A stretch of DNA of 64,000 nucleotides from Macrostomum lignano (taxonomy: Eukaryota). Within the stretch, counting starts at the first letter, position 1, and each line of letters begins with the position of its first letter. Under the pieces are notes generated by a model. The model saw nothing but the letters and a program-made list of their open reading frames with translations. It was not told the DNA's origin and did no database searches. Shown piece by piece: positions 45,246 to 49,029 of the stretch. The stretch lies in the NCBI GenBank assembly GCA_002269645.1, contig NIVC01000907.1, positions 306,858 through 370,857 of the forward strand. Reading direction: 5' to 3'. Both the position numbers and the translations under genes were made by a program.

Positions 45246-48200
45246 ATGGCTCCCGTGGCTGACAGCTCCACTGACTGCGGAACCGCCGTGGCTGCGATCG
45301 AGTGAGTCAGCGGTTTCAAAACTGAAATTGACAGATTTATGACATTCGATGGCATGTTGATGGTTTTTTAAGCTTCCCTTCTTCACAGAATCGGCGCCAA
45401 GCAGCTCTCCGGGATGCGCGCCGCCAGGCTGGACTGCGCTGCGCTGCTGCTGGTGTGGCTGCAGCTGCTGCTGGTCAGCCACCTGCTGGCCCTGGACCTG
45501 GCCGCGGCGAGCCACAGACTGGGGGCTCAGGGTTGGTTGAATGCCTGCTGACAGACAGACAGACAGACAGACAGACAGACAGACAGACAGACAGACAGAC
45601 AGACAGACAGACAGACAGACAGACAGACAGACAGACAGACAGACAGACAGACAGACAGACAGACAGACAGACAGACAGACAGACAGACAGACAGACAGAC
45701 AGACAGACAGACAGACGGACAGACAGACAGACAGACAGACAGACAGACAGACAGACAGACGGACAGACAGACACGCCAAATATGTCCTCGCAACAATAAT
45801 TTCAGGCACAGAGAGCCGCAAGGCATTCTACGCAGTTCTGGTGCTCTCTGTGGTGTTTGTCATTGAGGTCTGCGCCACTCTCAGTTATTAAATATTAAAA
45901 TATTCGTCTGCCCTTAAACTTGAGATTTTTTAATTCGTTCATTCTGCAGACAATTTATCGCTTAGCTCGATATTCTCGAAGTCGGAAACGAAACCGGCTG
46001 ACTGCCATCGATGTGAGTGGGTGTTTTGAGTTGGCTAGATGCTGACGATGACAATGATGATGATGATGATGATGATGATGATGATGATGATGTTGTCATC
46101 TAACGATCATGATCATCTAATGATCATGATCGTTAGATGACAACCAGAACGGCTTCCGAAGTGGAAGATCGACGGCGGACAACGCACAGATATTCACCAG
46201 GATGCACGAGGACATTGCCGAGTACCTGGAAGCAAAAAGAGCATCAGGAGACTGCAACATCGAAGATACAGAAACGGCAATCCTCCTAGACCTCCGTAAG
46301 GCATATCCGAGAGTGTGCAAGCCGATCCTGTGGGGAATCCTCCAAGCGTACAAGATGCCGCAAGAGACGATCGAAAAACTGAAGGACCTGCATGAACATA
46401 CCGCGTATAAAGTGCAAGGCAAGGAGAAATCAAGCGAAACATGGCTACCCGAGCGAGGCTTACGCGAGGAATGCCCAACTTCCCCGATATTATTTAACAT
46501 TTACCACCAGGCGAGCATCAGGAAAGCGGAAGAAATTCGGGAGACAGAAGCGGCCAGCAGAGGATTAAGCTGCGGAGTGGAATGGACGTACCTACCCGGC
46601 CACTACTTGCCACCTCAGAGAATCAACCAGTACAACTCGGAGATGCGAACGGTCAAGTGGACCTCATCGCTCTTTGCAAACGACACCACCATCCTAGGCA
46701 ATGACAGAGAACTGACGAGAAGCCTAACAACGACCAAAGAGAATATGAAGAAGTTCGAAGAACTGACAAATGACGAAAAGCAGGAGGAGATGGCCCTAGG
46801 AACATCCGTTGGAGGTAAAACTCGCATCCTAGGGTCGTGGATGGATAGGAGATACGACACACAGCAAAGAATCCAGAGAGCCGCCAAAGCGTGGAATGCG
46901 ATCAGGAAAAGGTTCCATCGATGCCGCCTGAAAAAGACCACACAAGCTAAAGTGGTCGAGGCGTGCGTGGAAAGTGTACTCCTGTTCCATGCGAACACCC
47001 GCCCGTTCCTGCTCGGCGAAATCAAGAAAATGCAACAGTTCATCGACAAAACATACCGCAACATTTGGTCCAGCAAGAGAATAGAACCGCTGCGCGAAAT
47101 GGAAAGCCTGGGAGTAAATATGCAAGATATCCGCAACGAACTAGGTGTTGTGTCATTAAGGTCAAAGATTGAGAAAAGTCACCTAAAAAGGATTGGCCAC
47201 GTCCTACGGATGGAAGACGACAGACAAATAAAGCAAGCCGTATTAGGGTGGTACAGAGGCCTGGAAAGGATCCCTAAGCGCAAAAAACGGAAAAACAACA
47301 CCATATCCTACTGGAAGCGCCTCATCCGGGAAGCCGGTATGGAACCGCAAGACATCGAACGCCACGTTCTAGACAGGAAACACTGGCGGAACGTTGTACA
47401 CCAGCGGACTGTACACCTACAAGAGTGGGAGAGAGTGCAAGGAAAAAAGGCCAAGACGGACAGTAACAACAGCCTGATCGAACGAAGTCAAGAACGGTAC
47501 CACGTAAAAACGAACCCGAGAGAGGTTGGAGATGGCTTCAAATGCGAGTACGAACTCTGCGGCAAAGTGTGTAAAAGCAAGGGCGGACTAACCATCCACC
47601 AAAAGAGGATGCATCGCGTGTTTAAAGAGCCGGTGAAATTTAGATGCCACAAATGCGACAAGGAGTTCCGACAGGAAGCGACCCTGGCGAACCATGAGAA
47701 GGTGTGCCAAGGCGAGACGGAAATAGATGCGTCAAGAGTAAAATGTCAGCAATGTGGAAGCACAATCGTAAAATCGAACCTAGCGAGGCATAGAAGGACA
47801 TGTAAAGAACAACACCACAGTCCACCGAAGATGGAGGAGAACAAGAGAAGAGCAAGAAAATACCGAGGGAAGACAGCAGAATGCGACAAGTGCGGAAGAA
47901 CGTTATCGGCGACAAACATAGCGCGACACAAACGCACTTGCGGTGAAGCCTGACGCTGTTCACTCCACGCCGCAAGGCGATAAACGGAGAAGAAGAAGAA
48001 GAAGATCATGATGATGATAATGATGATGATAATGATGATGATGATGATGATGATGATTATGATGCTAATGATGATGATGATGATGATGATGATTATGATG
48101 ACGGTAAAGGTGATTATGATGATGATCATCTCACCCCAACCCCGCAACCTCAGGCTGTGGACGCCCTGATTTCAGTGCTCAGCTGCTGCCTGAATTTCTC

Positions 48201-49029
48201 CCTACACTTCGCCGCCGTCAGCCCGCTGATCCGGGACCTCCTGGCCTTAGCGATCGGCCTTCGACTGCTGCGGATTCTGCACCTGGCCGGAGGTGAGCCG
48301 ACTCAGCGCTGAACACGCGAGCGCAGTCACAATAAACTTCCCTCGCCAACCCCCCCCCTCGCAGGCGTCAGCTGGTCGGAGCGCCGTCAGCTGGCGCGGC
48401 TGCTGGAGAAACAGCAGCGGCTCGCCGCCTTCAGCCTGGAGCGGCAGAAACGGCTGATGACGGAGCTGCAGAACAAGGAGAAGGAGTGCCTGGACCTGCG
48501 GGTGCTCATCCAGGTGGCCAACTTGTCCAAGCGGAGGCTGCGGATGCGGCAGCGTGAGTGACTAGGGGGAAAGTACTTGTCACTCTAACTGGACACTGTA
48601 GCTGTCACACTACTGATCACTCTATTGGTCACTCTACTGGTCACTCTACTGGTCACTCTACTGGTCACTTTATTGGTCACTCTATTGGTCACTCTACTGG
48701 TCACTCTACTGGTCACTCTACTGGTCACTTTATTGGTCACTCTACTGGTCACTCTACTGGTCGCTCGACTGGTCACTCTACTGGTCACTCTACTGGTCAC
48801 TCTACTACTCACTACATCTCTGCATCTAATCTATTCTTTTTCTTGCGAGCCGTAGCCTCAAGTAAACTTCATGGTTTGTTTTTAAGCCGCCTCACAGAGT
48901 CAGTGAAATTGTCCAGCCAATCACGTAATTACAGTTGAGCTTTTGCACCTGCATGAGCAAAGATTGACAGAAAGATTCAAAGAATTGCGTCAAAGCTGCG
49001 CGCCATCCGATCTGCAGATGAAAGGGTAA
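45246..49029 (+). CDS. Hv1/HVCN1-like voltage-sensor-only protein; exons 45246-45301, 45389-45531, 45806-45867, 45950-46012, 48154-48292, 48365-48553, candidate last exon 48971-49029 (236 aa)
   Basis: Six GT-AG introns with consistent phases; S1 RLDCAALLLVWLQLLLVSHLLALDL, S2 FYAVLVLSVVFVIETIYRL, S3 DAVDALISVLSCCLN, S4 LAIGLRLLRILHLAGG, then coiled coil ...ELQNKEKECLDLRVLIQ. The 3' end is ambiguous (alternative phase-1 exon 50090-50210). Confidence 0.8.
45549..45772. repeat. (GACA)n microsatellite in intron 2 of the Hv-like gene; another at 52430-52620
   Basis: Direct observation. Confidence 0.95.
46131..48003 (+). mobile_element. 5'-truncated RTE-like LINE in intron 4 of the Hv-like gene
   Basis: Frame starts in RT (DNQNGFRSGRSTAD, DLRKAY, GLREECPTSP, LFANDT with damaged catalytic motif), ends with four Cys/His zinc-finger-like motifs, TGA 47951-47953, (GAA)n tail; (GAT)n tracts on both sides. 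Confidence 0.88.

Follow-up and report, generated by a model that had tools for sequence, protein, structure and literature searches.

A highly divergent Hv-lineage gene of the flatworm Macrostomum lignano with a predicted voltage-sensor domain and replaced proton-channel signature residues

Introduction

We describe an unannotated gene of the flatworm Macrostomum lignano that lies in a 64-kb window, i.e., the last 64 kb of contig NIVC01000907.1 (assembly GCA_002269645.1, Mlig_3_7); coordinates given throughout are positions in this window. Seven exons on the + strand (45246-49029) are joined in frame to a 711-nt coding sequence. In the 236-aa product, the residues generic to voltage sensors are all kept and the determinants specific to Hv proton channels are all lost. 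The positions and phases of its introns identify the gene as a very divergent paralogue of the Hv lineage that stands beside the HV2-type genes of molluscs. We propose, with a probability of roughly 0.55, that the protein would act as a voltage sensor that has no pore, probably forms dimers and may respond to pH as well, and that it no longer serves as a proton-selective channel.

Few residues define an Hv channel, namely D112, the tryptophan of S4 and three arginines (residue numbers of human Hv1). Natural sensors in which the scaffold is kept and these residues are all replaced are therefore a test of the capacities of the remaining domain. To our knowledge, TMEM266 is the only voltage sensor with neither pore nor enzyme that has been studied, and we know of no identified target of its signalling. 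Other degenerate relatives of Hv (from Saccoglossus, Oikopleura and Limacina) have so far merely been listed. The kind of protein reported here is already known but uncharacterised; what is new is an unannotated case, far more divergent than those listed, with a histidine at the position of the third S4 arginine (R3). M. lignano offers transgenesis, RNA interference and a canonical Hv1 for comparison, making voltage sensing, histidine shuttling and pairing with Hv1 directly addressable.

A seven-exon gene encodes four hydrophobic helices and no pore domain

A preliminary description of this DNA had proposed a spliced model with four transmembrane (TM) helices and no pore domain. We reproduced this model exactly (Table 1). 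Every one of the six introns has GT...AG ends, and four of the six junctions are validated by introns common to mollusc HV2-type genes. The hydropathy profile contains four segments, S1 (residues 30-61), S2 (70-94), S3 (104-131) and S4 (125-156), with an N-terminus of about 30 residues before S1 and the end of the protein 64-81 residues past S4. GC content at the first, second and third codon positions is 0.66/0.43/0.78, compared with 0.34-0.50 in the introns (0.64 in one of them). Reading through the end of exon 3 meets a stop codon seven codons on. For the last exon there is an alternative in which the exon-6 donor is read through to a stop at 48559-48561, giving a protein of 219 aa.

Downstream of the gene, neither pore-like (S5-P-S6) exons nor other hydrophobic or coding-like open reading frames (ORFs) were found on the + strand as far as the next gene, at 53.8 kb, which rules out an overlooked pore domain. 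Since the exons stop before this next gene with neither pore nor phosphatase, the protein lacks both domains. A second copy of the gene was not found inside the window.

Voltage-sensor residues are kept and proton-channel determinants are replaced

Equivalences to human Hv1 were verified by three routes, namely alignment with hmmalign to a vertebrate Hv1 hidden Markov model (HMM), alignment to an HMM built from 95 full-length Hv sequences, and shared introns. Kept are D123 (D55), F150 (F84), E153 (E87), D174 (D111), S181 (S118), R205 (R145) and R208 (R148), together with K157 as R91 and E171 as D108. Changed are D112 to Q44, E119 to L51, H140 to F74, D185 to N122, W207 to L147, R211 to H151 and N214 to G154. 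All 14 residue calls made in the preliminary description agree with both HMM alignments and with the intron anchors. Its alignment to human Hv1, described as free of gaps, is so within the helices but not between them: the S2-S3 linker and the S3-S4 loop are each three residues longer than in human Hv1, and the S1-S2 loop is different.

A working definition of Hv channels asks for four TM segments, an S1 selectivity filter and the S4 motif RxWRxxR (Chaves et al. 2023; PMC10911540). The window protein has the first of these, a four-TM S1-S4 voltage-sensor domain (VSD) with no S5-S6, in which F84, E87, D111, R145 and R148 are in register in the Hv HMM alignment, and it has neither of the other two. 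More specifically, the filter position is occupied by Gln44, with position 116 also non-acidic (V48), and S4 reads R145-L-L147-R148-I-L-H151. The register of S1 at Q44 is fixed because D55, the equivalent of D123, lies 11 residues on and a shared phase-2 intron lies 25 codons upstream; that of S4 is fixed because a phase-1 intron sits in the G155 codon.

Among 150 diverse Hv representatives, tryptophan at W207 is present in all that cover S4, and position 112 is acidic in every full-length representative except 2-3 probable misalignments. The S4 tryptophan has been reported as totally conserved in eukaryotic Hv channels (PMC10377628). R2 is conserved in all Hv channels, with natural variation at R3 only to lysine. 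In the same review, D112 is the selectivity filter, and a neutral residue there abolishes proton selectivity and makes Hv anion-permeable (PMC10377628 section 3.1).

Shared introns place the gene in the Hv lineage

Intron positions and phases were compared within the Hv family only, against five Hv genes mapped on their genomic loci (kiwi HVCN1, the canonical Hv1 of M. lignano, Hv1 of the hemichordate Glandiceps, and the mollusc genes of Gigantopelta aegis, XP_041361903.1, hereafter P0257, and Pecten maximus, XP_033749865.1, hereafter P0216). The window gene and all five Hv genes have a phase-1 intron in the codon after the N214 position, where the residues read N-G, N-S or G-G. Three further introns are found in the window gene, P0257 and P0216 and not in canonical Hv1. 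The first, of phase 2, precedes the D112 position by exactly 25 codons (E19/Q44, S40/D65 and S29/D54, respectively). The second is a phase-0 intron right after the E153 equivalent, where the three proteins read FVIE, LFVIE and FVVE. The third, also of phase 0, falls right after the E171 equivalent and bounds a micro-exon of 18-21 codons, which ends in TAID in the window gene and in HKME or HKAE in the mollusc genes (18 codons). The intron of the S1-S2 loop is of phase 1 as in the mollusc genes, with its position offset by 6 codons in a loop of variable length.

That four of the six introns coincide exactly cannot be put down to chance. On these positions and phases, compared among the Hv genes above, the gene falls within the Hv lineage beside the mollusc group, and the HV2 lineage, so far described in molluscs, extends to flatworms. 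The shared introns also anchor the register of S1, S2, S3 and S4 without recourse to a sequence alignment. Intron positions can thus assign a voltage sensor to its lineage even when its sequence has diverged too far for Pfam to recognise.

The canonical Hv1 of the same genome (recorded as voltage-gated hydrogen channel 1; locus Mlig015660; UniRef A0A1I8J3W9, PAA92561.1, alias P0253, and PAA85510.1) has a complete signature, D/E/D/F/E/K/E/D/S/D/RLWRIVR/N, and a gene of three coding exons, with an intron after RFQ that the window gene does not have. The window protein matches this Hv1 at only 18 bits and the exon structures differ, so that a recent duplicate of Hv1 is rejected and the window gene is a second, old paralogue. 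In an older transcriptome survey, three HVCN1-like transcripts were recorded in M. lignano (PMC3447372). The Hv channels of Schistosoma were also tried as relatives and rejected, at about 0 bits.

Sequence similarity to Hv and its calibration

The spliced protein has no Pfam match even at E<=10, including PF00520 (Ion_trans), PF16799 (VGPC1_C) and phosphatase domains, and neither a phmmer search of PDB nor BLASTP against the Hv1 of M. lignano gave a match. By comparison, M. lignano Hv1 and P0257 pass PF00520 at 37.9 and 30.3 bits (cut-off 25), and PF16799 is missing in both of these too. Against the HMM of 95 full-length Hv proteins, the window protein scored 35.5 bits (E = 3e-13 for a single comparison), with an alignment that runs from S1 into the tail; 1000 composition-preserving shuffles reached at most 12.4 bits. 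Judged by this similarity, the protein certainly contains a VSD. On the same HMM, canonical invertebrate Hv proteins score 170-208 bits, TMEM266-like proteins 91-117 bits and a Saccoglossus protein with glutamine at the filter position (Gln61) 92 bits.

Profile and pairwise comparisons point to the mollusc proteins. With hhalign, the probability reaches 95.1% (P = 3e-8) for 8 mollusc HV2-like proteins, 94.4% (P = 9e-8) for the set of 95 Hv proteins and 20% for 3 invertebrate TMEM266-like sequences; an earlier shallow alignment of 6 vertebrate Hv1 alone gave 49% and was replaced by these wider ones. When the four-helix part was compared by phmmer, 8 mollusc Hv1-like proteins reached 19-24 bits, against 11.8 bits for a Nav1.7-VSD4/NavAb chimera, 6.5 bits for Ci-VSP and at most 2.1 bits for TMEM266-like proteins. 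With the tail included, mollusc HV2-like proteins reach up to 37 bits; canonical Hv1 reaches 16-18 bits by phmmer. Scores of invertebrate TMEM266-like sequences against the window protein range from -0.5 to 11.8 bits, and those of Ci-VSP from 5 to 6.5 bits. Similarity to Hv also exceeds that to NavAb and KvAP in pairwise comparison, within a very small set of non-Hv controls. Identity to every relative is 22-25%. NavAb and KvAP serve as rough controls only, as do several invertebrate sequences taken from a PDF supplement by machine reading. Because the non-Hv control set is so small, Hv-specific membership by sequence alone is likely rather than shown.

The question at stake here is whether the VSD could come from another family altogether, as a fragment of a Nav, Cav or Kv channel, a TMEM266 or a VSP that resembles Hv by generic VSD features only. 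A profile of the window VSD alone, searched against the whole of PDB, found only the Nav1.7-VSD4/NavAb chimera (E = 4.1), and this is consistent with such an origin, as are the missing Pfam match and the fact that Ci-VSP and the Nav VSD outscore the window protein on the Hv HMM. In PDB, a profile of vertebrate Hv1 itself gives 44 bits for Ci-VSP and 30-37 bits for Nav/Cav sensors. Against a non-Hv origin stand the four intron positions and phases common to HV2-type genes, the absence of pore exons and of a phosphatase domain downstream, an S4 that leads into a charged helix as in Hv, the hhalign probabilities of 95% for Hv and 20% for TMEM266-like proteins, and the four-helix phmmer scores, in which the HV2-like proteins come first. 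We find this origin scarcely credible.

The preliminary description had called the protein a non-canonical Hv paralogue, putatively non-conducting, of altered selectivity or a modulatory partner. The assignment to the Hv lineage stands on the four shared introns, but the sequence argument originally offered for it does not, the protein being no closer to Hv1 than Ci-VSP or Nav VSD4 is, and its closest relatives are of the HV2 type and not Hv1. A plain TMEM266 or VSP orthologue, an outcome for which the same description had allowed, is excluded by the 20% hhalign probability to TMEM266-like proteins, by the lack of TMEM266 features and by the lack of a phosphatase downstream. For TMEM266, more specifically, the N-terminus, the C-terminus, S4 and the marker residues all differ. 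For VSP, the stop codon lies 64-81 residues past S4, no coding-like + strand ORF follows before 53.8 kb, and there is no Pfam phosphatase match.

Comparison with known voltage sensors

The mollusc HV2-type proteins (AcHV2 of Aplysia californica, P0257 and P0216) are the best sequence and profile matches of the window protein. The S3-S4 loop has the same length and in part the same sequence (F..VS...RD), and in both the VSD leads directly into a helical tail. Yet the mollusc proteins retain the Asp filter, RxWRxxR, N214 and D185, of which the window protein has none, and their His-rich S1-S2 loop of 75-100 residues contrasts with about 14 residues in the window protein, with one histidine between D55 and F74; identity is only about 23%. 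AcHV2 has been described as a proton-conducting channel with the full signature, a His-rich S1-S2 loop of about 79 residues and a multi-exon gene (PMC10911540). The mollusc relatives found here fit this description in their long His-rich loop, multi-exon gene and full signature. The window protein has neither the long His-rich loop nor the full signature that mark the AcHV2-like subfamily. As a side observation, two extra, near-identical partial copies of the S1 exon stand just upstream of it in the Gigantopelta HV2-like gene (about 40955-41356 of its locus; 89-94% identity over 17-18 residues), and these may be local exon duplications.

With canonical Hv1/HVCN1 (human Q96D96; Mlig015660), the protein shares the pore-less four-helix VSD, the charge-transfer centre, the first two S4 arginines and the phase-1 intron after N214, and it differs at D112, E119, H140, D185, W207, R211 and N214, which are all replaced.

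Degenerate Hv-derived sequences have been listed in a 2023 review, among them a second Saccoglossus gene (Gln61, no Trp), Oikopleura genes (S4 deletion) and a Limacina sequence (Trp-less), and were judged unlikely to be proton-selective and possibly to have other functions (PMC10377628 section 2.2). For flatworms, the review gives two Hv channels in Schistosoma and one Macrostomum accession (PMC10377628). The Saccoglossus kowalevskii protein (LOC102802600, XM_006812030) resembles the window protein in having Gln61 in place of the filter Asp, in the loss of the S4 Trp and in being encoded by a second Hv-like gene beside a canonical one; it differs in its higher score on the Hv HMM (92 against 35.5 bits) and in a long C-terminal extension. 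As an orthologue it was rejected at 14 bits against the window protein, using a machine-read sequence with gaps in S4.

TMEM266 (HVRP1, C15orf27) resembles the mode proposed here in combining S1-S4 with a dimerising coiled coil and in having a neutral residue at the D112 position. It is a functional voltage sensor with no ionic current (V111, M185), and orthologues have been reported only in vertebrates (PMC6392501). Its N-terminus of about 100 residues and disordered C-terminus of about 250 contrast with the short ends of the window protein (about 30 residues before S1, 64-81 after S4). Its S4 reads RxxRxKR followed by D217, and it has V111, M185 and E118/D122/H139, where the window protein has an S4 ending in RILH, Q44, N122 and L51/D55/F74. 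The VSD of VSP (Ci-VSP, TPTE2) is also alike in having neither an acidic filter residue nor the S4 Trp, and VSP gives gating currents only (PMC10377628); the PTEN-like phosphatase and C2 domain of VSP are absent from the window gene. Finally, engineered S4 Arg>His sensors (Shaker R>H; Hv1 R1H) carry a histidine in register with the S4 gating charges, as H151 is at the R3 position, with the difference that they are laboratory mutants in otherwise intact channels.

Proposed function

Under our preferred reading, the gene originates in the second lophotrochozoan Hv lineage, that of molluscan HV2 or AcHV2-like genes. The residues of generic voltage-sensor machinery are retained, with F84/E87/D111 as charge-transfer centre, D55 and D108 as counter-charges, R145 and R148 as S4 charges, and a basic residue at the K157 position (R91). 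S4 continues straight into a predicted helical tail that probably dimerises. The proton-channel determinants have been lost, namely the S1 filter Asp, the S4 Trp, the third Arg, N214 and D185, as well as the Zn/acidic site on the external side (E119>L, H140>F). The outcome would be voltage sensing with no proton-selective voltage-gated conductance, in the manner of TMEM266 although the protein is not TMEM266. The gene model, the residue map, the descent from the Hv lineage and the canonical Hv1 elsewhere in the genome are established here; that the window protein is expressed, senses voltage, dimerises and does not conduct protons selectively, we infer.

The predicted tail is helix-favouring and charged. 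C195 falls in the core when the heptads are set in their best register, and the phmmer and hhalign alignments to mollusc Hv run on through residues 156-200. In that register the hydrophobic excess at positions a and d is 0.29, compared with 0.33 for human Hv1 by the same crude measure, and 18% of shuffles equal it. A coiled coil is plausible, although this heptad pattern is not significant. No similarity was detectable between this tail and the tail of M. lignano Hv1 or of other Hv (at most 6.7 bits; BLASTP with no match).

If the tail does pair, the partner could be the canonical channel, and the protein would then act mainly as a regulatory subunit, forming heterodimers with Mlig015660 by way of its C-terminal helix and altering the gating or trafficking of that channel. 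Hv channels dimerise via a coiled coil that continues S4, with gating cooperative between the subunits (PMC6392501), a canonical partner is present in the same genome, and a Cys occupies a core heptad position in the tail, as one does in human Hv1. The dissimilarity of the tail to the Hv1 and other Hv tails speaks against such pairing, and TMEM266, when co-expressed, left Hv1 gating unaltered (PMC6392501). We regard a regulatory subunit as a very doubtful alternative.

The replaced residues also raise the question of whether ions are still moved, either by a His proton shuttle or leak (H151 at R3, possibly H50 in S1) or by an anion or cation gating pore following loss of the Asp/Arg pair. An S4 Arg>His substitution makes the Shaker sensor a proton transporter or a pore, and Hv1 R1H leaks protons (Starace & Bezanilla 2001/2004, Randolph 2016, discussed in PMC10911540). 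A neutral residue at D112 gives an anion-permeable Hv (PMC10377628), and lower hydrophobicity of the gasket has been reported to give a proton-selective leak via closed channels (cited in PMC10911540). In the window protein, polar Q44, N122 and S115 (at the hydrophobic-gasket position V178) line the predicted crevice. Against ion transport, the argument proceeds by analogy alone, and the D112V mutant of human Hv1 is reportedly non-conducting, which would weigh against this alternative, a neutral residue being no guarantee of a pore. Furthermore, TMEM266 carries no current (PMC6392501). We consider that some form of ion transport is unlikely. More specifically, natural voltage-driven proton shuttling by the histidine, or anion passage through the former proton pathway, appears more unlikely still; if true, it would be the natural counterpart of the Shaker and Hv1 Arg>His mutants and of Hv1 mutants neutral at D112, and a new mode of ion transport in the Hv family.

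Coding constraint and the possibility of a pseudogene

A number of observations weigh against a maintained voltage sensor of the Hv lineage. The Hv HMM gives Ci-VSP 53 bits and the Nav1.7-VSD4 chimera 47 bits, both above the 35.5 bits of the window protein, with NavAb at 30 bits. The heptad periodicity of the tail is not significant in the crude test. The introns contain a 1.8-kb fragment of a long interspersed nuclear element (LINE) and long microsatellites. No counterpart was found at E<=1 among 5.8 billion predicted proteins, including transcript-derived ones, in a word-indexed search (shared 5-residue words), and no orthologue was retrieved. Lastly, the extreme divergence could reflect relaxed constraint.

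Taken to its end, the last point would make the gene a pseudogene, recently inactivated or never expressed, i.e., a decaying HV2-type copy whose frame is still open by chance. The absence of annotation and of any matching predicted protein would fit such a copy, as would the loss of all function-specific residues, the very low similarity to any relative and the load of transposable elements and microsatellites in the introns. It would also fit that M. lignano is a neopolyploid with redundant gene copies (PMC10733133) and that a second contig is 99.6% identical over the part compared. However, neutral drift to 22-25% identity would not retain a 236-codon ORF, six GT-AG pairs and four ancestral introns, and the strong third-position GC bias persists. 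Only Hv-specific positions have been lost, and D55, F84, E87, R91, D108, D111, R145 and R148 are all kept, which looks like changed and not absent constraint. The missing protein record is uninformative here, as the adjoining and obviously real UBE2Q gene has none either. Because the ORF, the six splice-site pairs and the codon-position bias survive at 22-25% identity, we infer coding constraint over most of the gene's history. A pseudogene thus seems improbable, if still to be reckoned with, and a voltage sensor under altered constraint is the reading we prefer.

Gene features and genomic surroundings

Coordinates of the gene and of other features in the window are given in Table 1. The window is eukaryotic in character, with LINEs, microsatellites and spliced genes.

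Table 1. Exons and selected introns of the Hv-lineage gene, and other features of the 64-kb window
Feature	Position	Strand	Content
Exon 1	45246-45301	+	Start codon, N-terminus MAPVADSSTDCGTAVAAI and first 2 nt of E19; donor GTGAGT, phase 2
Exon 2	45389-45531	+	Pre-S1 and S1, residues 19-67; Q44 (selectivity-filter position), H50, L51, D55; donor GTTGGT, phase 1, in S1-S2 loop
Intron 2	45532-45805		Nearly all (GACA)56 microsatellite (45550-45773)
Exon 3	45806-45867	+	End of S1-S2 loop and first half of S2, residues 67-87; F84 (F150), E87 (E153); ends FVIE, phase 0
Exon 4	45950-46012	+	Second half of S2 and S2-S3 linker, residues 88-108; R91 (K157), D108 (E171); ends TAID, phase 0
Intron 4	46013-48153		2141 nt; holds 5'-truncated non-LTR retrotransposon ORF in (GAT)n array
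Exon 5	48154-48292	+	S3, S3-S4 loop and S4, residues 109-155; D111 (D174), S118, N122 (D185), R145, L147 (W207), R148, H151 (R211), G154 (N214); ends in phase 1 within G155 codon
Exon 6	48365-48553	+	Helical Leu/Arg/Gln/Glu-rich tail continuing S4, residues 155-218; putative coiled coil
Exon 7 (uncertain)	48971-49029	+	Last 18 residues and TAA stop (49027-49029); weak acceptor, no homology support
Promoter-like elements	45127-45162		TATA-like element at 45152-45162
Retrotransposon ORF in intron 4	46130-47950	+	607 codons open
(GAT)n array in intron 4	46038-46092 and 48004-48126		Around the retrotransposon ORF
Inverted repeat in intron 4	46092-46116 / 46120-46144		Perfect, 25 nt, 3-nt loop
Tandem repeats around and in the gene	44089-45088, 45550-45773, 48574-48806, 49554-50000		21-mer x22, (TCTA)28, (GACA)56, 12-mer x19, 24-mer x18
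Inorganic pyrophosphatase, family I	28141-29009	-	Intronless, 289 aa
LINE	37705-42149	+	ORFs in successive frames
UBE2Q-like E2 gene	53819-57119	-	Last exon 53819-54265
Mariner/Tc1-like transposase fragment	58998-59573	+
ETS-like ORF	63426-63761	-

Upstream of exon 1, a TATA-like element, TTTATTTAATA, lies 84 bp before the proposed ATG and an inverted CCAAT (ATTGG) 20 bp further up; the two fit a putative promoter for this exon. The retrotransposon ORF in intron 4 is of the non-LTR (long terminal repeat) type, has the orientation of the host gene and contains RVT_1 and C-terminal C2H2 zinc fingers, with the inverted repeat at the 5' junction of the element. Tandem repeats are dense around and in the gene (the 12-mer x19 array lies in intron 6, which like intron 2 consists for the most part of such repeats), and several of them produce long spurious ORFs on both strands.

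The last exon of the UBE2Q-like gene matches Pfam UQ_con, and an upstream exon was identified too. Its best database relatives are 64-66% identical. As the gene has no M. lignano entry on record, annotation looks sparse at this end of the contig. Look-ups of five ORFs of the window likewise gave no recorded protein.

Over the part compared (up to window position 39890), contig NIVC01000908.1 shows about 99.6% identity to the window, apart from tandem-repeat lengths near 35.4-36.7 kb, and the product of the pyrophosphatase gene is identical on NIVC01000907.1 and NIVC01000908.1. The long LINE upstream of the gene has ORFs for APE-type endonuclease, reverse transcriptase and RNase H, and looks near full length and frame-shifted. 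The transposase fragment matches Pfam Transposase_1 (49 bits) and HTH_Tnp_Tc3_2. At the far end of the window, the start of one ORF resembles the C-terminal end of the ETS DNA-binding domain (KISRALRHYQRGGMLHKE...RYVYRF) at 20.6 bits, below the Pfam cut-off, and this ORF could be the terminal portion of an ETS transcription-factor gene extending beyond the window.

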